The notes below the pieces were generated by a model. It was not told the DNA's origin and searched no databases. It saw only the letters and a list, made by a program, of their open reading frames with translations. From contig ADNK01001510.1 in assembly GCA_000320545.1 (NCBI GenBank), positions 1 to 64,000 on the forward strand: a DNA stretch of 64,000 nt. The letters are read 5' to 3'. How positions within the stretch are numbered: the stretch's first letter is position 1; each line of letters opens with the position of its first letter. The position numbers and the translations under genes are program-made. Of this stretch, positions 2,291 through 50,060 are shown piece by piece. The DNA is from Bigelowiella natans CCMP2755. Its lineage: Eukaryota > Protista > Cercozoa.

Positions 2291-2326
<36 letters not shown>

Positions 2327-4616
2327 TGTGAGCGCCGTTTGTTGTTGCATTTCGCAGAAAAAGGTGATGAAAGATGCAAGTCTCACCTTACTTTCAAAGG
2401 AAAAACTGGTTAGTCGAAAAGAGAACGAGAAGAGGAAAAAGAAGAAGAAGAAGAAAGCCACCTAGAAGAGGAGGGGGGGGGGAGGAGGGGGAGGGGAATG
2501 CAAAGAGAGAGAAATCAATGTGATTGATTACTACAAGACATTGATGCTGCATAATGTTTTTTCCGAAAGGGTTGATAACCTAGGAATGTTTCCGCTGCAT
2601 GTTATGATTGTTTATATCGTTGTTATTGTTATTATTGTTATTATTATTATTGATGATGATGTTGTTGTTATTGTTATCGTTATTGGAACCGAAAATACAG
2701 CCACTACTTACTACCGCTACTTGGTTTCTTAACTTAAACGCCATAAACACTATTATGACAACACAGCACCTGGAGGGGGTACTAAGTGGCAGAGAGTATC
2801 AAGAAGCTTTGGATCAGTACGACAAACAGGTATGCAATGATAATGATGATGATGATGATAATGCACATCTCATCTACGACGTATTTTCACGGGGCTGAAG
2901 AGTAACATGTAAACGGTACAACGAGCAGGTTGAAGGCGTGATGCTGTTGGCCTGGAACTCCTTGCAACTGTCAAAAAAGGGGAGCACTTTACTTGCTATG
3001 CGGCCACCCTCTTTCAAAGAGGCAAGGGATATCATGGTAATTAATTGGTGGGGGGGGGCCGATTAAGGCGAGAAGAAGTTATTCGCAAGAAATCCCTTCC
3101 CCTTCTCCTCCTCTTCCTCCTCCTCCTCCTTGTTTCTTCTTCTCTACGACATTACCATCACCACTAACACCATCACCACCACCATATCTCCTCCTCCTCC
3201 TCTTCCTCCTCCTCCTCCTACTACTGCTATTATTACTACCATTAGGGGCAGATACGGCAAGCAAGGCTGCACCTACCAGATCTGGCGTCCAAAACGTCTA
3301 AGGAGCTCTCAGAAGCACTTATCTGGCTTGCACAAGGTGGGTCAACCTCTAGATATGAGATCGATCATAAGCCACGACGACGATGACGAAGTGTGATGAT
3401 GGGTAGGATGGTTGAAGTCGTATTTGTCTTGAGTGTACTATCGACGAAGAGAGCCTGTTGTTATTGCCATTCCAATAGTCGTTGTCCTCATCGTTCCAGC
3501 ACTTTGTACTGTTTTTGCTGCTGCTGCTGCTGCTGCTGTTGCCGTTCAGGTGACTATTGCATGGATTATCTTCGACTTGAAAGCAAGAGAAATACACTGC
3601 GCCAAGTCCTTACCTCCCTCCTGGTAGGAATTCAATTGAATATAATGAGTGTGATAACCAATCAATCAATCAATCAATCACGACGGCGTAGTAGGGCAAT
3701 AAACGAGAGGATTGAGATGATGATGAGGATGATGTTGATATGGTGATATATGGGGATAGAAAGAAAGGCAGTAAAGTCTTCGGTGAGAAGGGGGGTCTGA
3801 TAACAATACATTCCTCCTCCTCCTCCTTCGCTACTCAGGCAAAGAAACAGTCACAAACGCATGTCAGTGCGTACCAATTCCAGGACTTTGTCCAGTCCTT
3901 CGGCAACTTAGAGTTCCTCATAAATCGGGTGCTTTTGTCGTTGATCCGCATCTGCTACCCACAAGGAATGAGGAAGGCTCGGAATAAGCACCAATGGTAT
4001 CAGTCTTAGAACTATTGCTGCTCCAATGGCGCGACGATTTCAACACCTCATCTATTCATTTAGTTCATCATAATACCGAATAGTTCCATAATTTAGTTGC
4101 CAGCATCATCATCAGCAGCAGCATCATCATCATCGTCATCACCACCATCGTCATCATCATTATTTACATATGCGTTTGTATAACCTTGCCTTTTGAAAAT
4201 ACATTTGTTTCACTCTGCGGCTCTCTCTAATCAGGTATCTGCAACCGTTTTTCTCCACTGATAACCGGTGCGTGCATATAACAATAGATTTATATAAATA
4301 TATAGTATAATAACATATATACGTGCATCTTTATTGTGGTGCGGGAGCTTGCTCGTACGCACTTGCCAAGTCTCTTCCACTCTCCTATCTTTGCGTGTAG
4401 ACTTATATACATGTACTTTTCCATGATCATTATCGTAATGACCATCATCGTTGTTGTTGTTTGCTACTGTTGTTTGCCGTTGTTGTTGTTGTTATTGTTG
4501 TTGTTGTTGTTGGCAGAGACGAGAGGGAGATTATGGCAGCTATGAAGGCTACTTCAAAGAGGGGCGAGTACATCATACGGCCTGCTCATAATAAGATTGG
4601 TACTTAGCAGTAGTGT

Positions 4617-4660
<44 letters not shown>

Positions 4661-5186
4661 CTACTGCTGCTTTTGACAAGAAGAAGTAGAAGCCAGTATG
4701 ATAGAAGAGACACGTTGTCGTTGTCGTCCACATTATTATCACCGAAATACTACATCTATCGTCAATTAATTAATCGATAAGCTGCTACTACGGCTGAAGA
4801 GATGTGCATTTATTCCAGACTCTGCCATATATCACCATCATCATCATCATCATCATCATTATCATCATCATCATCATCATCATCCTTCATCGGCACCAAT
4901 TCCAAATTGTTATAGGCGTTTTCAACCTGATCTACCGCGACTGTACCTCTGGCAGTAGTAGTCTGCATGTTCTCCCAATCGTCAATGTACCCGAAAAGGC
5001 TCGTTTTTGCATCGTCAAGAATAGAAACAAGGAGGGAAAGGGGGTGTCTTCGGCGAGGAATTACTACTTCACACTGATCGATATTATCAATGATATGAAG
5101 GTGATGAGACTGCGAGCACATGCTTTCATTATGTGTGTGTGTGTTGTGCGTTGTGCGTTGTGCGTTGTGCGTTGTGCGTTGTGTGT

Positions 5187-5224
<38 letters not shown>

Positions 5225-5761
5225 ATTTGTGTGGGAGCAAATCCACCCAAGAAAGGTGCTCTATCATCCTTTATGAGTGCTGTTGTGATATAGAATGCTA
5301 TGTTTAAGAAAATGTTCCAATCTGGATTGCGTACGTCTTCAAAAGTGTCATCACGTCAATGATGATGATAGTGATGATAATGGTGATGATGATGCGAAGA
5401 ATAAGCGTGATCATTATTATTATTATTACCACTATAATCATCATCATCGTCACCAATATCATGACCACCACAATCTACCATATTACTCTTTAGGATGAGC
5501 TCAAGAATCCTTTCGTCGATCCAGATCTCCAAACAACGTTAAATCTTCGTGGCACTGGCATTAGAGTCGCTGTCAGCATGTTTCTACAACCAAAATTCTC
5601 CCAAACCCGCCTTTACGAGATGTTTGCGGTCCCATCCAGTCTGAACAAAAGTAACAAGAGAAGACATCACCACCGCCCTCGCCTCCTTTTTTCCCCTTCT
5701 TCTTCCTATTCTTCTTCGTCGTTATCGTCGTTGTCGTAGGTTTTGATACCGTCGTGATTAT

Positions 5762-5794
<33 letters not shown>

Positions 5795-7709
5795 ATATCA
5801 TTATCTTTATCATCAGATTTAGGTTACTTCTGGATGGACCCAACACGTGAGTTGCTGTACGATCGTGATATAGAACTCTTCAATATCATCCTGAATATCT
5901 ATCGGTAAAATCCTCCTCCTCCTCCTCCTCCTCCTCCTCCTCCTTCTCCCCATAATGCTGTTTTTCTTCTTCTTTCTCCTTAATCGATTATTATCCTCAC
6001 CACCACCACCACCACCACCACCACCACCGCTACCTCCTTAACTTATTCCTATGATCACTTTCATTCAACATGGGGATGCTGATGCTGATGACGATAATAG
6101 TGAAAGTTAACGTAGTAACGTAGTAAAGAAGAGGAGGGGGGGGGGGGGGGGGGCACGGAGAAACACACAGCTTGTGAATGGATAGAATTGTTTATGGAAA
6201 TGTGTTATTGTTGTCTTCTTTGTCGTCGTTGTTGATGATGTTGTTATTTTTGTCGTTGCTGCCTTCTTCTTCGATCTATAATTAGTTACTACCCTGACAT
6301 TATTCTCTCCTCTTCCTCCTCAAATGGTGGGGGTAGAGGAGGTGGAAGTGCGGATAAGAAGAAAGAGGCCATCATAGCCGAAAACAAGATTCTCCCTCGT
6401 GAAATGCCAGAAGGGTTCTATAGCCTACTCAAGGATGAATTCACCTACTGGAAACTTCCTTATGATGTCAAAATTGCTGGCGACAAGAAGAGTATATGGC
6501 TCACGTATAACCCTGGCAAGAGATTTCCGACCGACGAAGAAATGTCAGTGAATAATGTCATGTTCATGTGTTAACACATATGTAAGCATGTGGGGGGAGG
6601 GGAGAGTGGACGAGAGTACATTTGTAGCATAAAGATGGTAAACGTAGAACCCCAATCGTTTGTTCTTGTCAGATATGCTGCACGGAGTGATTGTACTCAT
6701 CCAAAACATCTACACTCACACACAGACATATTGTATATAACACACACATCATGTGTATATATTTAGCCTAAGAAGAGAGCGTGCCGCAGCTACTAGTAGC
6801 AGCTCTTCCTTGTCCCGTTTGCGGTCTAACTCTGGAGGCAGTGAAGGATATGGAAGCGATGTCGATGGGGATTTTGAGTCTATGGACCCTGACGATGACA
6901 TGGATGATGTGGAAATCTTTGACGCAGGAGGGGGGGGGGGGCAGGAAGAACCGCAATCTGGAATGATTAACAGTATGGGGCAAGGCAAGGATGCTTGGGC
7001 TTCTTCTATGAGGTGATGGTGACACAATACACGCATTACTGCGAGCAATTATTGAGTTAGTAATAGTAGTAAAAATAGCGTCGTCAAAGAGTTGTAGAGC
7101 TGATCTCCTGACCTCTCTTTGTTGTTTGCCGTACATTGTTACAGTGGCTTGTCCCATGATAACAAGCACAACTCCTCCGACAACAATGGCGTTGAGGATG
7201 CTGATGCTTTGCTACCGATCGAGCAGCTCAAGCACGCATACGAGGTATTAGAAGGATTGCCACTGTTCCACGAGGACCCCAATGGGAGGGTCATTTCGCC
7301 TCCATTCTCGGCCGGCGATAAAGTTGAATATATGTCGCGCAGTACAGGTTATAAGTTGTTCTAAATTAGTAACGTCTACCATGCCGCGCGAGTAGATTTG
7401 TTTACCTGCAAATATGCACATCTTTCTTTTCAAGCATTGGAGGCGTCGTCGTCGTCGTTATCGTCGTTCAGTCAATCACTCATCTTGACATGATAATTTA
7501 CTGGTGCTGGTTGTATATGCTGTGTAGGCAAGTGGTTCGGCGCCGTTGTGCAGCATATCGACATGGACGAGAAGGTGACTGTGATTCTCAACACCTCCCA
7601 ACAACCAAAGATTGCCACTTTCGGCCAGTTACGCGAGAAGGAGGAGGAGGATCGCCACGGTTACACGGCGGCAGTTTTGGAAGGCTTCGAAGAATTTGAT
7701 GAGGAATAA
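81..7709 (+). CDS. Multi-exon protein with Cbl-type EF-hand-like segments, SH2-like domain, BTB/POZ (T1/KCTD-type) domain and C-terminal Tudor/Agenet-like domain; 5' end probably outside the window
   Basis: Manual GT-AG splicing. 660-892 gives DVSNILQ|DPNAQQFWVANFG. 3839-5100 gives HVSAYQFQDFVQSFGNLEFLINRVLLSYLQPFF...KRGEYIIRPAHNKIGVFNLIY...YFTLIDIINDMK. 5493-6545 gives TTLNLRGTG...RLYEMF...ELLYDRDIELFNIILNIYR...LKDEFTYWKL. 7300-7630 gives FSAGDKVEYMSRSTGKWFGAVVQHI. Stop TAA at 7707-7709. Some middle exon boundaries (1300-2800) are uncertain. Confidence 0.75.
5143..5192. repeat. (GTTGTGC)n heptamer repeat grading into (GT)n, intronic
   Basis: Read directly from the sequence. Confidence 0.85.
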
Positions 7710-44609: not shown

Positions 44610-45842
44610 TTAAACATATCCTGGCATCAAATAACCGCCTCGTTCAGCCGCAACGGAGCCATGAAGTGCAGACATACGATGGTGACCGAGATTCGATAGG
44701 GTTCTAAACATCTCAAAGACCATGGGTAACGTGTTGGATGCCAAGAGGACGGCAGTGTAAGCACATGCGATGTAGATCACAGTCGGAGGCACAATTGGCT
44801 TGTCCTTTTCCAAACTAACTCTTCCTGAGAAAGAGCTTCCTATATTTTTCTGGGGGCCTATGACGTAGCCAATTATCCCCCCCGCTATAAGACCTCCCAT
44901 GTGTGCGTAGTTGTCAATCCTGGAATGAGGTTGTAGACCGTAAAGAACATTAAGACCTATTGTGAAGAGGAGGGAATTCACACTTATGCCTACCGGAGCA
45001 ACCGTGATTTTGTTCTCAGATCGGTAAATATGTGCAAGCAATCCACCGAGGATACCGAAAATGGCTCCTGACGCACCAAGGCTTCGCCCATAGTAATCAC
45101 CGTACCACAACCCAACCAAGTTTCCAGCGAAACCGGAGAGGAAATAAAGAGTGAAGAACCGAACACGCCCGAAGAGTTCTTCGAGTGTCGGTCCATAGTT
45201 CCTCAGAGTGAGAGTGTTGATTAGCAAGTGCATGATTCCTCCATGGAGAAATATAGATGTCCATAGACGATGGGTCTGCCCGTGAGCCACCAGATCGTTT
45301 GCTCTAATTCCGATTGCAGTGAACCGTGGTGAGAGCTGCTGGAACACGAAGAAGACGATATTGGCAATGAGGATGAAATATGTAACTTTCTGAGCGCTTG
45401 GTAGGCTGAAGAGAGACAGAATTGAACGGAGTGAGAACTGTGATCGGGGCCTGAACTGTCCGTAGTTTGGCCTTCTTCGTCCATCTCTACGATTTCTACG
45501 CCCCGCGAAAACACTAAATCGCCCTACTCCTGCGTTATTACTGTCTATATCATCAGAGGTATCACGAGATGTTGCTACATCCCTTCCCATTGGCAGGAGG
45601 GAGAGACTCTTGGTAGGATTTCGCGAAAAGGAAGACGACGTGCCAGTGCGGTGCACCAATGGAAACCCTACTACTACTACCCTGGATGCTGCTTTTGGAG
45701 ATATGACGGCTACCTCTCGTGCTCTATTTGAGGATGATCTGTACACACTGGCTTGTCGAAATGGCCTCGTTACTGTGGAAAACGATGTGACGAGGGGGAT
45801 GCAAAGAAGGACCACATGGTGGAGCCCGGCTGGGGGCGCCAT
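44610..45842 (-). CDS. Rhomboid family intramembrane serine protease, intronless, with a bipartite-like leader (probably plastid-targeted)
   Basis: HRLWTSIFLHGGIMHLLIN, SLGASGAIFG (catalytic Ser) and IDNYAHMGGLIAG (catalytic His). Leader MAPPAGLHHVVLLCIPLVTS followed by an S/R-rich stretch. Confidence 0.93.
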   Translation of the reverse strand: MAPPAGLHHVVLLCIPLVTSFSTVTRPFRQASVYRSSSNRAREVAVISPKAASRVVVVGFPLVHRTGTSSSFSRNPTKSLSLLPMGRDVATSRDTSDDIDSNNAGVGRFSVFAGRRNRRDGRRRPNYGQFRPRSQFSLRSILSLFSLPSAQKVTYFILIANIVFFVFQQLSPRFTAIGIRANDLVAHGQTHRLWTSIFLHGGIMHLLINTLTLRNYGPTLEELFGRVRFFTLYFLSGFAGNLVGLWYGDYYGRSLGASGAIFGILGGLLAHIYRSENKITVAPVGISVNSLLFTIGLNVLYGLQPHSRIDNYAHMGGLIAGGIIGYVIGPQKNIGSSFSGRVSLEKDKPIVPPTVIYIACAYTAVLLASNTLPMVFEMFRTLSNLGHHRMSALHGSVAAERGGYLMPGYV

Positions 45843-46181
45843 TCTTGGAGGAAACACTTGTTGTTTGGCACTTTATGATGCCAAAATGGCCTGCGTTTAG
45901 GCTAAAAAAAGATGGGGAACTTGTTCTCGTACATCTGTTGTTGTTGTTGTTGTTGTTGTTGTTGTCTCATCATTCATCGCCATGAACATTAGTCAGAAAT
46001 ATATCCTAGTCTTTCCTAAGACAGATGATACCGATGAGCGACTAAATAACTCACTTGTTACTAGCCACTAACTTAACATCACCAATTAGTCAAAAATATA
46101 TACCAGAACTTTCTTAGTATAGATGATAGTCGATGAGCTACTGAACTGATTACTATTCAAACCAATCAACGCCACCACCAA

Positions 46182-46795
46182 ATGAGCTCCAAGGTAGGAA
46201 GTGGAGGTACGACCAAGAGGAGGTGGTTCCAGAAACGCATCGAGGTCAAGTGTCCGAAGGCATCAGGGAGAAATGGAACTCATTGCTACTTGGCTACAAC
46301 CGCCATCCTCCGTCAAATACCGGAGATACGGTAGAGAACTAAAAAACGTCACGTTTGCAATCATTTGTCCAATGTGCTCGAAGTGATCTCCTTCATTTCA
46401 GCTTTTCACATCTCTACACGTTGCTCCTTCTGTTTCAGCCTCCTTCAACGAATACAAATTTAGTACGTCTCATATTATTCTGTTGTAAAGGTCAATAAAG
46501 TCCGGTGCAATTAACTTTTTCCTAAACTCTCCGGGTGGCAGGTAAATCGCATGCATAGACAAAACAAATCTCCATGTATGCGAAGGCACATATTCTGCTT
46601 GTTTCTCGACAATGATATACTCTTCTCCCTTTCCATATCTCTCATCCAGCCTCTCAGTCAATGAAAACGCCGATCCCACAGTGCGCACTGATATGGATGG
46701 TGCTATGGAGAGAATGTGTGAAGCTGGCGTTGGCCAAAACGGAATGAAAGATAGAAACCTCCAAAGTCGTAAAAGAGCGTGGAAGAATATATACA

Positions 46796-46831
<36 letters not shown>

Positions 46832-49415
46832 TCTTCTTTTTGTTTCTTAATCCGAGAGTGGCTCAGCCTCATCTTCACCCAATCCTAGGAGCATTTAAAT
46901 CGTCTCTATTTGGCCAATCGCTCACACTTCCGGTTGCGGACGGAAACATTCTCTTTGGTGCTTACGGATAGACTAGTTTACATTTAAATTCATAACCTCT
47001 ATAATTTATGTATCTATACAAATTTGTATTCCTACCTGCGCACTACACATACACAGAGCACGAGGGTTTATCACCATTAACACATACAAATTGATGAAGC
47101 CATCACAGCTCCTCCTCTGTCTGCCATCATCATACTGATTGATTACTAGGAACTTGGCAGGGAATATACCTTTGTAGCTGGGACGATGATAGAGACGATG
47201 ATGGTGATAATGGCGGGTGCCCCGTCAGGAAGATCACTGTGACAATCTACCATGAACCTTCTGCTCAGGTCAATAATATGATAAAAAGACAGAACAAATA
47301 GCAGTAGTGCAATAGAAGAAACAACAAGATTTGCGCGTTTGTCCGTAGGTTCGCAATGTTACAGTTAAGCCACCGGAGAGAGGAGTGCACTCCATCACTG
47401 CGGAGATAGCGAAGGTGCGGTAGAAGAAAAAGAGGAGGAGGAAACGCTGTGTTTCACGGACTGAGCATAGTATTGATATGTTGTTCCCACTGATTTATTA
47501 TAACCGGCTTTTATCTTGTTGCTGTTAGAACTACTTGTGGTGTTTGTAGTAGTAGCGGCAGCAATAGGATCTATGTATTCGGATGATGTTCTTTAGAGAT
47601 GTACGTGCACATGAATGCATGTGTATTGTTGTAAGGGGTTTCATCTGGAAACAAAAAACGGTGGAGCAAAGTCAGGGAAAAAACAGAAAATGGGGCAAGG
47701 TTCGTTCGTCTTTAGTACCGCTACTATCCCAAGTAAAAATAAAATGTATAATCTACACATTGATCGGTCTTCCTCTTCATCGAGTCATTCCCATTCTTCC
47801 TCTCTTATTGCTCCTCCTCTTCTGCCCATGCTTCTTCATGCCTCTATTATAATTTCTATCACTTGTTCTTGCATCATGAATGATAGGCGTTCTCTATGCA
47901 ATGGTCAAACACACTTCGGCATCCATGGGCCTTACGTGCGTGAAGCCCCAAGATATGAAGACACTGGACAAAGCATTTGATAACGTTGTACCCGAGAAAT
48001 GGAACGATGAGTTCTTCATCCATACATACGAAGGCCCAGGTTGATATTGTTGTTGATGTTGATGACGACGATGACGACGAAGATACCCATGGCTCCTGTT
48101 ACAATTGGCCTTTACTACTACTACTACAACTACTACTACTACTACTATTGTAGACGATATGCCTGGCCACGTAAAGTCTTCATTATTTGGTGTGGCGACA
48201 TCTCTGCCCATAAACGGGGGGGAAATCGATCTACCGGAAAATGTAGGCCTTGTGCTCGGGGGTAGGATTATGTAAAAAAATATGATGATGATGACGATGA
48301 AGGAGGATGTGTTTCAAGTAGAGATGCGGAAGACCACTCATTTTTCTCTAATCTGCTCATCTTGTGCAAGCAATGTTATTATTAACATTTATTACGTTGT
48401 TCCTAGAGCATCGTGACGTAGGATGGGGGCACACTAGAAGGGTCGATGAAGAACATATTCTCTTTACAGAATAAGCATTACAATCAATAATATACTTGGT
48501 GACACCTCTCAACACATATCACAAAGAGCGTGTGCGGTCGTTTGTTCCATTCATTTCCGGTCAAATATAGCTATAGCTACAATTTGTCTCTTTTTCAGGT
48601 CGTAGGTGTGAAAATCACAGACGGAGTCATCGCATCGAAGGAAGTCCAAATAAGCGGGGACGACGACATTAAAGGGGACATCTCCCCACTCATTGTAAAG
48701 GCGGTTACTGGTCAATACTTTTTACGATTCGTCTTCGTTTTGGCATACGCTTTCCATTTCTGATGAGCCTACGCACGTGCAACAAACACGCACATACTAT
48801 AACACGCGCGTGCCCACGTATCTCCAACACACTTGAATAGCTCCACATTATGACTGACTTGTGCATACTTTAGTATTTAGTATTATTTATTGTTAATATC
48901 TTAGTCTTCTACTTGGTTTGTCAGAGATATCATCGGTTGAAGCTGGATGGTGCACACTAATTGCAAAAGGAGACGTCACATCAGCCCTGACAACGGTAAA
49001 GTACCAGCACAAACCTGTCTTAAATTAGAGAGATATAGAATCCACATCTACATGTATCTAACAAAATGCGGTTGGGAGGGCTACAATATATCATAAAAGC
49101 AGTTCTCTTTGTACTACCTTTCGTCGTCTTGATTAGTTTCCGAAAGGCAGCAAAGACGATGATGACGATAAGGAGATCGATATGGCCAAGCACTTTAGGA
49201 ATCTAACCTCTAGTGATACCGGGTTGGCATTTGCTGGAAAATCTTTAACAATACCCATAATAGATGGGGATCTGGATACCAGAGAACAGGCTATTATGTA
49301 TCTGTGCAACTCAGATAATCTCTCATCGAATACAAATCAGAACAATAAAGGCGGGGTAAAGACAGTTCACGTCCTCGTTCTTGGCGGGGAAAAAGTTAAA
49401 AATGAGCACAAGTGA
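46182..49415 (+). CDS. Triple-repeat YjbQ/UPF0047 family protein
   Basis: Repeat 1: WFQKRIEV..LSVNENADPTVRTDM..KSSLFGQSLTLPV..GTWQGIYL. Repeat 2: RGVHSIT..KHTSAS..HTYEGPDDMPGHVKSSLFG..EHR. Repeat 3: DISPLIVKAV..GWCTLI..GKSLTIPIIDGDL. The GT-AG junctions I checked keep the frame. Confidence 0.88.
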
Positions 49416-49419
49416 TGAC

Positions 49420-50060
49420 ATCATCAGCTGTGCATAATGTATGTTAGTGTAGTGATTAGTTCTGGTAGCAGTGGTTGGTAATGGCAGACAATATATCACA
49501 TATATGGAATGTAACTCGCAATATACAATGCGAAAGTACTCACGTGCATGCAAACAATATGGACATATTTCTGTATGTCATATGCAAGAAATCTTGCGCA
49601 AGGTGTCTAGATATGTGCCGATAGTAGACGTACTCTATTACTGCTAGACTGACGGTCTTTGTTATAGGGATACATTGCATGATGCGATGGTACTCCCGCT
49701 TACGACTTAGTGAAACAGCAATTGCGTTAGCACAACTATAATCTAGATAATAAATGCATCGATAGTCAATATGTTACATAGTCATCACACACAGGTGACA
49801 CCTCTAGACATTTGATCGACCGCGAATTGCATAAATGCATCTTCGTCTAGTACATGTAAGCTGCCGTAGCGCAATCCTAATGAGGTGAGCGCTACATTCT
49901 CACCTGATTGCAGCATACATACCTACGTAGTATTTCATATTGTAGCTACATCAGGATATGACCATTGAAAAGATTATATCACTTATTCATTACATCCGTC
50001 TCATATTGTCATTGCAATCTTATTGATTGGTTTCACTTGCATTATAAAGACAACGTTGCA
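49420..50060. other. RY-alternating, palindrome-rich convergent intergenic segment 6
   Basis: CACGTGCATGCA, CTTGCGCAAG, several TCTAGA, CTACGTAG, ACGTTGCAACGT; between stops 49415 (+) and 50071 (-). Confidence 0.65.

Follow-up and report, generated by a model that had tools for sequence, protein, structure and literature searches.

Within the window analysed here, a stretch of 64,000 nucleotides from Bigelowiella natans CCMP2755 (contig ADNK01001510.1), a single gene occupies positions 46182-49415 of the + strand, with its start codon at 46182, its stop codon at 49413-49415, and 13 exons separated by 12 introns. Its product of 463 residues comprises three tandem YjbQ/UPF0047 domains, which we call R1, R2 and R3. 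YjbQ proteins, which are found in bacteria, archaea and eukaryotes, are normally single domains of about 140 amino acids that form homotrimers, and the B. natans protein is probably such a trimer in a single chain, with one predicted composite site between R1 and R2. This architecture had been proposed in a reading made earlier from the sequence of the window alone (the sequence-only reading), and we consider here the transcripts of the gene, the domains and motifs of its product, and the relatives that bear on this proposal.

Gene structure and transcripts

No long open frame runs across 46182-49415; instead, the + strand carries short in-frame pieces with YjbQ-like motifs. Twenty public sequencing runs from seven studies contain 30-50% of the words sampled from the 3.4-kb stretch, which is roughly the expectation for the exons alone. 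In assembled contigs of runs X1, X2 and X4, which come from three different studies, we found 11 joints that skip intervening sequence, and all 11 show GT..AG borders. The records of these runs carry no RNA label, and we take them to be RNA-derived because spliced contigs can arise only from RNA; X21 (raw reads), the sole run with an RNA label, covers the 3' end only (49175-49567), with first mates on the + strand. Record 7 of X2 (908 nt) extends from 46169 into exon 9 and record 14 of X4 (1166 nt) from exon 5 to 49554. The joints of exons 1 to 5 were found in the same runs, and overlapping contigs together reach from exon 1 to the 3' untranslated region, which extends to about 49554; 5' contig ends lie at 46160-46169. 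The twelfth intron, intron 8 (48040-48153), sits in a masked repeat. It is required because record 14 of X4 has 143 nt between exon 8 and exon 11, that is 108 + 35 nt, and it was placed from the length of this record and from the transcriptome protein P0002, in which it is spliced out. The region of this intron (48040-48158) contains triplet repeats, GAT/GAC followed by CTA, and many unrelated contigs end there in loose sequence.

The exons, all on the + strand, are listed below with the parts of the protein that they encode; GT..AG joints are given as the last and first exon positions, and PF01894 is the YjbQ family of Pfam.

Exon 1, 46182..46330, +: start codon and N-terminal strands of R1; joint 46330/46491 (GT..AG) in X1, X2 and X4.
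Exon 2, 46491..46541, +: SPGG (46528-46539) at the HTSA position.
Exon 3, 46650..46765, +: NENADP (46660-46677), followed by a degenerate remnant of H..EG.DDMP.H; joint 46765/46889; PF01894 positions 31-55.
Exon 4, 46889..46957, +: AFKSSLFG block of R1, in which the His of the.H.KSS motif is lost; PF01894 positions 73-91.
Exon 5, 47150..47268, +: GTWQG (46957 + 47150-47163), an acidic loop insert and the last strand of R1; PF01894 positions 95-117.
Exon 6, 47349..47414, +: first strands of R2, with nearly no linker after R1.
Exon 7, 47636..47699, +: 64 nt encoding a Lys/Gly-rich loop insert in R2; joints 47414/47636 and 47699/47887 in X1, X2 and X4.
Exon 8, 47887..48039, +: HTSAS (47910-47924) and HTYEGP (48021-48038) of R2, with TCVKPQ at the NENADP position; genome match of 30.9 bits.
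Exon 9, 48154..48261, +: DDMPGHVKSS (to 48182), with PENVG at the GTWQ position; PF01894 positions 68-98.
Exon 10, 48407..48441, +: EHR motif (48261 + 48407-48414); joints 48261/48407 and 48441/48599.
Exon 11, 48599..48710, +: last strand of R2, passing directly into the first strand of R3 (about 48620).
Exon 12, 48925..48995, +: R3, with GDVTSA at the HTSA position.
Exon 13, 49137..49415, +: C-terminal half of R3 and stop codon; joint 48995/49137.

Joined by script, these exons amount to 1392 nt or 463 codons with zero internal stops, and the introns measure 80-221 nt. The exon 10 donor at 48442 precedes an in-frame stop, which without splicing here would terminate the protein after two repeats. 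P0002 (255 aa, from an MMETSP transcriptome) is an exact suffix of the window protein, corresponding to its residues 209-463. The spliced contigs, the open frame of 463 codons and the match of P0002 therefore establish that the locus is one gene with one message. The sequence-only reading had likewise placed all repeats in one chain and one mRNA, with two or three separate genes as the outcome to be checked for in transcripts, and its limits of 46182 and 49415 are exactly the first base of the start codon and the last base of the stop codon. Its exon set needs correction: the 64-nt exon 47636-47699 had been overlooked, and two boundaries were slightly off, among them that of the last exon, which it began at about 49151 and which starts at 49137 according to the spliced joint.

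Unspliced contigs were also present over introns 4, 9, 10 and 11 (46929-47178, 48232-48435, 48416-48627 and 48681-48953), at a depth below that of the spliced forms; P0001 is an open reading frame (ORF) starting inside retained intron 9, whereas the frame of P0003 continues past the donor of exon 11. Intron retention or pre-mRNA seems to be frequent at this locus.

Domains, motifs and relatives of the protein

Exons were searched singly against Pfam and were joined only in scripts for translation, scoring with a local hidden Markov model (HMM) and alignment. Exon by exon, PF01894 was the sole family matched, with 12.5-18.8 bits per exon (below the curated cut-off of 27 bits) and in colinear order, the matched profile positions being 31-55, 73-91 and 95-117 in R1, 20-65 and 68-98 in R2, and 76-106 in R3. 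In a six-frame profile search of the genome, the same family scored 30.9 bits at 47883-48242 (R2) and 36.5 bits for R1 with its neighbours. Scored as a protein, P0002 reached 69.9 bits, above the cut-off. With a local HMM derived from 26 YjbQ proteins of one domain each, we obtained 81 bits for R1 (aa 15-163) and 108 bits for R2 (aa 170-312), but just 6 + 6 bits for R3, which alone is also below the PF01894 cut-off, so that the Pfam HMM detects R1 and R2 only. When a profile of the third repeats of 26 related proteins was compared by hhalign with the alignment of single-domain YjbQ proteins, the two matched over 124 columns (98.1%, E 1.3e-13). In the AlphaFold model of P0002 (pLDDT 85.8, pTM 0.85), residues 110-247, which correspond to R3, resemble whole YjbQ chains (1vph, Z 10.3; 1xbf, Z 9.9; 2p6c, Z 9.2), compared with Z of at most 4.8 for unrelated chains and Z 10.7-11.7 for R2 in the same model. 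Judged by profile and predicted fold, R3 is a YjbQ domain despite its lost motifs. A search with exon 13 (92 aa of R3) against 1.84 billion representatives at E<=0.001 returned only its own cluster (P0001), because R3 diverges too fast for single-sequence searches. A sequence search of the Protein Data Bank (PDB) with one exon of 50 aa, too short for this purpose, gave only matches to aspartases, which we judged to be chance and rejected. There is practically no linker between the repeats, and the last strand of each continues directly into the first strand of the next.

The sequence-only reading had named three tandem YjbQ/UPF0047 repeats, and these are borne out by the local HMM for R1 and R2 and by profile comparison and fold for R3; of the three matches that it expected from a UPF0047 HMM, those to R1 and R2 were obtained, but R3 came to light only by profile-profile comparison or fold.

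The conserved motifs of the family are divided between the repeats. R1 carries NENADP (aa 71-76) and GTWQG (aa 129-133), has SPGG (aa 63-66) at the HTSA site, and is without the HTSA, H..EG.DDMP.H and EHR motifs. R2 carries HTSAS (aa 220-224), HTYEGPDDMPGHVKSS (aa 257-272) and EHR (aa 299-301), with TCVKPQ at the NENADP site and PENVG at the GTWQ site. R3 has none of HTSA, NENADP, H..EG.DDMP.H.K, GTWQ and EHR. No single domain therefore holds the full motif set, that of R2 being restricted to HTSA, HTYEGPDDMPGHVK and EHR, and the complete set is obtained only by summing R1 and R2. In the spliced protein, the motifs kept and lost in R1 and R2 are those listed in the sequence-only reading, and R3, which it described as scaffold only, retains the fold (Z 9.2-10.3) without the motifs. 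One detail differed: the segment of H..EG.DDMP.H was said to be lacking from R1, but a degenerate stretch of similar length is found at its position, since exon 3 continues to 46765.

Word-index searches with P0002 and then with P0005 yielded 45 further triple-YjbQ proteins of 370-590 residues, so that with the window protein 46 were compared, each with two strong domains and room for a third. Dozens of PF01894 proteins of 370-590 residues occur in JGI, ENA, Logan, EukProt and MMETSP data. They include proteins of Mesostigma viride and of the chlorarachniophyte Norrisiella, and the best-sampled group of triple-YjbQ proteins is eukaryotic and mostly from Chlorophyta, as is a cluster in the ESM Atlas (160 members from Eukaryota only, mostly Chlorophyta) that bears the name 'putative secondary thiamine-phosphate synthase enzyme'. 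By sequence, the window gene is a member of a widespread eukaryotic family. The sequence-only reading, which suggested a search of protist proteomes for the triple architecture, had treated the protein as a curiosity, which is at odds with 45 relatives of the same architecture. The closest full-length homologue, P0005 (415 aa), shares 52% identity with the window protein over the full length. Its model forms one compact body (pLDDT 93.6, pTM 0.93) with the same order of strands and helices three times, R1 included; its R2 matches YjbQ chains with Z 9.4-11.5 (rmsd about 1.9 A over about 130 residues), and a 480-aa relative from a chlorophyte, modelled independently in the ESM Atlas, can be superposed on it over 401 residues with a TM of 0.90. 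These models indicate that the three-repeat chain folds as one compact body.

For the comparison of the 46 proteins we combined the motifs into two sets, X for the His/Asp-rich motifs HTSA, H..EG.DDMP.H.K and EHR, and Y for NENADP and GTWQ (TWQ), and scored the fraction of consensus residues kept per set and repeat. Two groups were distinguished, group A with 18 proteins and group B with 28, including the window protein, P0005, P0009 and P0077. The digits after X and Y denote the repeat, and X1 and X2 are from here on motif sets unless called runs.

X1: group A 0.17, group B 0.15
Y1: group A 0.99, group B 0.94
X2: group A 1.00, group B 0.99
Y2: group A 0.99, group B 0.17
X3: group A 1.00, group B 0.03
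Y3: group A 0.19, group B 0.06

The half-set of R1 (Y kept, X lost) is common to all 46 proteins, and X1 and Y3 are lost jointly in every triple-YjbQ protein examined. In group A, with which we class the ESM Atlas cluster and whose members of about 415-515 residues include P0006, P0007 and P0062-P0076, R2 is complete and R3 has the His/Asp motifs only. Y2 and X3 are kept together in 18 of the 46 proteins and lost together in 27, the window protein among the latter; the one exception is P0077, a near-identical counterpart of P0064 from a truncated gene call. The complementary split of motifs that the sequence-only reading saw in one protein is thus conserved throughout the family.

In a tree of the repeats, all R1 domains form one clade with 99% support, which speaks for the fusion having arisen only once. 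When the motif columns are left out, group A remains a clade of its own in R1 (98%) and in R2 (99%), and R2 and R3 together form one clade (98%). Sixteen R2 domains of group B cluster with the R3 domains of group A, not with its R2 domains (84% SH-aLRT), also without the motif columns; this grouping might be spurious, brought about by shared loss, or might hint at a more complex history such as domain replacement or conversion.

A probable composite site between neighbouring repeats

How the two motif sets are combined can be judged from what each pairing leaves over. If X and Y of the same repeat formed a site in cis, group A would be left with a single site plus two half-sites perfectly conserved without a partner, and group B with no site. 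If Y of one repeat were paired with X of the preceding one, Y(i+1) + X(i), conserved orphans would be left in both groups. With the pairing Y(i) + X(i+1), each conserved set is partnered, and for each lost set the partner is also lost: group A would have Y1 + X2 and Y2 + X3, group B would have Y1 + X2 only, and Y3 + X1 would be gone everywhere. As this is the only pairing without a conserved orphan motif in either group, we infer that the YjbQ site is composite and lies between subunits. If a site is built in trans from neighbouring repeats, Y2 and X3 should disappear together, as they have in the group of the window protein. The comparison thus supports the proposal of the sequence-only reading, a fused trimer with one composite site at the R1/R2 interface, which we regard as the likely interpretation of the motif pattern.

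The history of the protein might then be reconstructed as follows. An ancestral YjbQ homotrimer, in which each site would have been composed of Y of one subunit and X of the next round the ring, would have been concatenated head to tail almost without linkers, and after the fusion the three sites would have been free to decay independently. The site Y(R3) + X(R1) would have been lost in every triple-YjbQ protein seen, and the site Y(R2) + X(R3) retained in the mainly chlorophyte group, with both of its halves lost in the group of the window protein. The one site remaining in the latter would consist of the NEN/TWQ motifs of R1 and the His/Asp motifs of R2, and R3 would serve as structural filler which closes the ring. 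X and Y would accordingly meet at the R1/R2 interface, where a metal or substrate would presumably be bound and the chemistry would take place.

There are other conceivable explanations for the pattern. If the YjbQ site were formed in cis, no repeat of the window protein would hold a complete site, and the protein would be a pseudoenzyme, that is a catalytically dead scaffold or a binding protein. This would agree with the observation that none of its repeats has both motif sets, with a family that has no established activity, and with a site geometry that is deduced from sequence. However, Y1 and X2 keep 94-100% of the consensus over 46 divergent proteins, compared with 3-19% for X1, Y3 and, in group B, Y2 and X3, and two orphan half-sites would not stay invariant in a dead protein; a site in cis would furthermore make R2 alone functional in group A, where Y1 and X3 would then be conserved for no reason. 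A dead protein is thus improbable. Just as improbable is a subfunctionalisation in which the NEN/TWQ motifs of R1 and the His/Asp motifs of R2 represent separate sites that do not touch, such as a substrate site and a metal site. Contact cannot be shown by sequence, and the X and Y motifs are located in different parts of the domain, but Y2 and X3 have disappeared together in 27 of 27 complete proteins and persist together in 18 of 18, and X1 and Y3 are both gone in all proteins, a paired decay that would not be expected of independent sites. Finally, the fusion could be an artefact of annotation, in which two or three YjbQ genes or pseudogene fragments were joined by read-through or chimeric contigs. 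The unspliced contigs of lower depth over four introns, the start of P0001 in retained intron 9, and the in-frame stop that follows exon 10 if intron 10 is unspliced might be taken in this sense. Against this stand the in-frame splicing of all 12 introns in contigs from three runs of different studies, the independent transcriptome protein P0002, and the same length and order of three repeats in 45 homologues of other organisms, many of them on short cDNA-like contigs; an artefact is largely refuted by these observations and has next to no probability.

Several points weigh against the composite-site interpretation or reduce the weight of the evidence for it. The full coding sequence is covered by overlapping contigs, none of which spans all of it, and the models are of P0002 (the C-terminal 255 residues) and of P0005, which is 52% identical, and not of the whole window chain. 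The convergence of the R1 NEN/TWQ and R2 His/Asp motifs in space is deduced from their pattern of conservation. With the poorly resolved backbone of the repeat tree, the joint loss of Y2 and X3 may represent one event or a few, so that 27 proteins do not equal 27 independent trials. Moreover, with the biochemical function of YjbQ not established, the 'active site' might be merely a ligand site.

If the composite-site interpretation is correct, the fused forms represent a natural complementation experiment, which would reveal that the site lies between subunits, which motifs belong to each half, and in which direction the halves are paired round the ring. A chain with one site also removes the threefold redundancy of the trimer, and single-residue mutants, stoichiometry and co-crystals would be easier to interpret; the predicted stoichiometry of metal or ligand is one per chain of the window type, two for the chlorophyte form and three per bacterial trimer. 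It is further conceivable, though we consider it unlikely, that the succession from a homotrimer with three sites via a two-site chain to a one-site chain was a selected, stepwise reduction in which R3, which evolves fast, was re-used together with the dead interfaces (R2/R3 and R3/R1), for instance for a regulatory ligand or a partner protein. In that case, the proteins of protists and algae would be enzymes with a function of their own and more than fused YjbQs. Whether or not this is true, the series of three, two and one sites would provide a natural map of the YjbQ residues which act in trans, for a universal family without a known function.

Related loci and known systems

A second triple-YjbQ gene is present in the same genome at G000:C1824 (33500-42500 stretch, about 2298-6552, +). 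It is colinear with residues 59-571 of Norrisiella sphaerica P0097 and shows the same one-site pattern, with LNEKADPAI and GTWQGFYLCEF and no HTSA in R1, RHTSAS and GPDDMPGHVKSGLLG in R2, and a degenerate R3. The colinearity with Norrisiella is suggestive, though no proof, of a chlorarachniophyte origin. In its R1 exon (1441-1794, +, of stretch L003), AGLTIPIVDYELAL occurs twice in tandem directly before GTWQG, which could be a genuine duplication of 14 residues or an assembly artefact. A weak YjbQ-like C-terminal fragment, IGSWQ...RRLGVQIIG, was noted at G000:C1957 (55000-63000 stretch, 4042-4134, -), with 7 bits in the local HMM and 21 bits in Pfam, and may represent a strongly diverged third copy or a chance match. 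In the window, an intronless ORF of 415 aa with a Rhomboid domain (PF01694, 112.6 bits) lies at 44610-45857 on the - strand, divergent from the YjbQ gene, with start codons about 325 bp apart; intron 3 of the YjbQ gene contains a (TA)n microsatellite (46784-46841).

For YjbQ, a weak secondary thiamine-phosphate synthase activity is on record, which is the source of the database name, and there is no agreed function. Two multicopy phenotypes are reported, in thiE and pdxB mutants of E. coli. A 2026 preprint states that yjbQ 'has no clear function', and in the library searched we found no paper on the active site, the trimer or multi-domain forms of YjbQ. The nine YjbQ entries in the PDB (1VE0, 1VMF, 1VMH, 1VMJ, 1VPH, 1XBF, 2CU5, 2P6C and 2P6H) are all single-domain structures from structural genomics, and several hold three chains. 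These single-domain proteins (PF01894) share fold and conserved motifs with the domains of the window protein; they are chains of about 130-145 residues with all motifs, in contrast to the window protein with three domains per chain, none of which has the full set and one of which has no motif at all. The two-site proteins of group A are closer, with the same three-repeat chain, the same overall shape (TM 0.90, 401 residues) and the same half-set in R1, but they keep NEN/TWQ in R2 and HTSA, HTYEGPDDMPGH and EHR in R3, which gives two predicted sites instead of one.

Outside the family, a close parallel is dUTPase, where a homotrimer with sites shared between neighbouring subunits has been fused into one chain (PMC12524310). 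In the monomeric herpesvirus enzyme, several motifs were lost and two domains form a single site, and the dUTPase of Drosophila virilis is a single-chain pseudo-heterotrimer (PMC12524310). These enzymes differ from the window protein in that family and chemistry are unrelated, and in the number and state of their domains, which are two in herpesviruses and three near-identical ones in D. virilis. The Toblerone fold of the cyanuric acid hydrolase AtzD and of barbiturase has been described as a concatenated YjgF-type trimer with a pseudo-threefold chain (PMC3758960); it stems from another parent family and has one central site to which all three repeats contribute. The whole model of P0005 (residues 1-415) matches Toblerone chains only weakly (Z 3.9-4.6, too low for homology), and it also matches weakly the dUTPase-related pp71 of human cytomegalovirus (HCMV) and jelly-roll capsid proteins (Z 3.9-5.2 overall), which suggests at most a similar overall arrangement and is no evidence of homology. 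The principle of concatenation is thus known from dUTPases and the Toblerone fold, and the fused YjbQ chain, with its one predicted site, is a further example, a clean addition to the few cases where the fusion of a homo-oligomer lets its sites decay or diverge singly.

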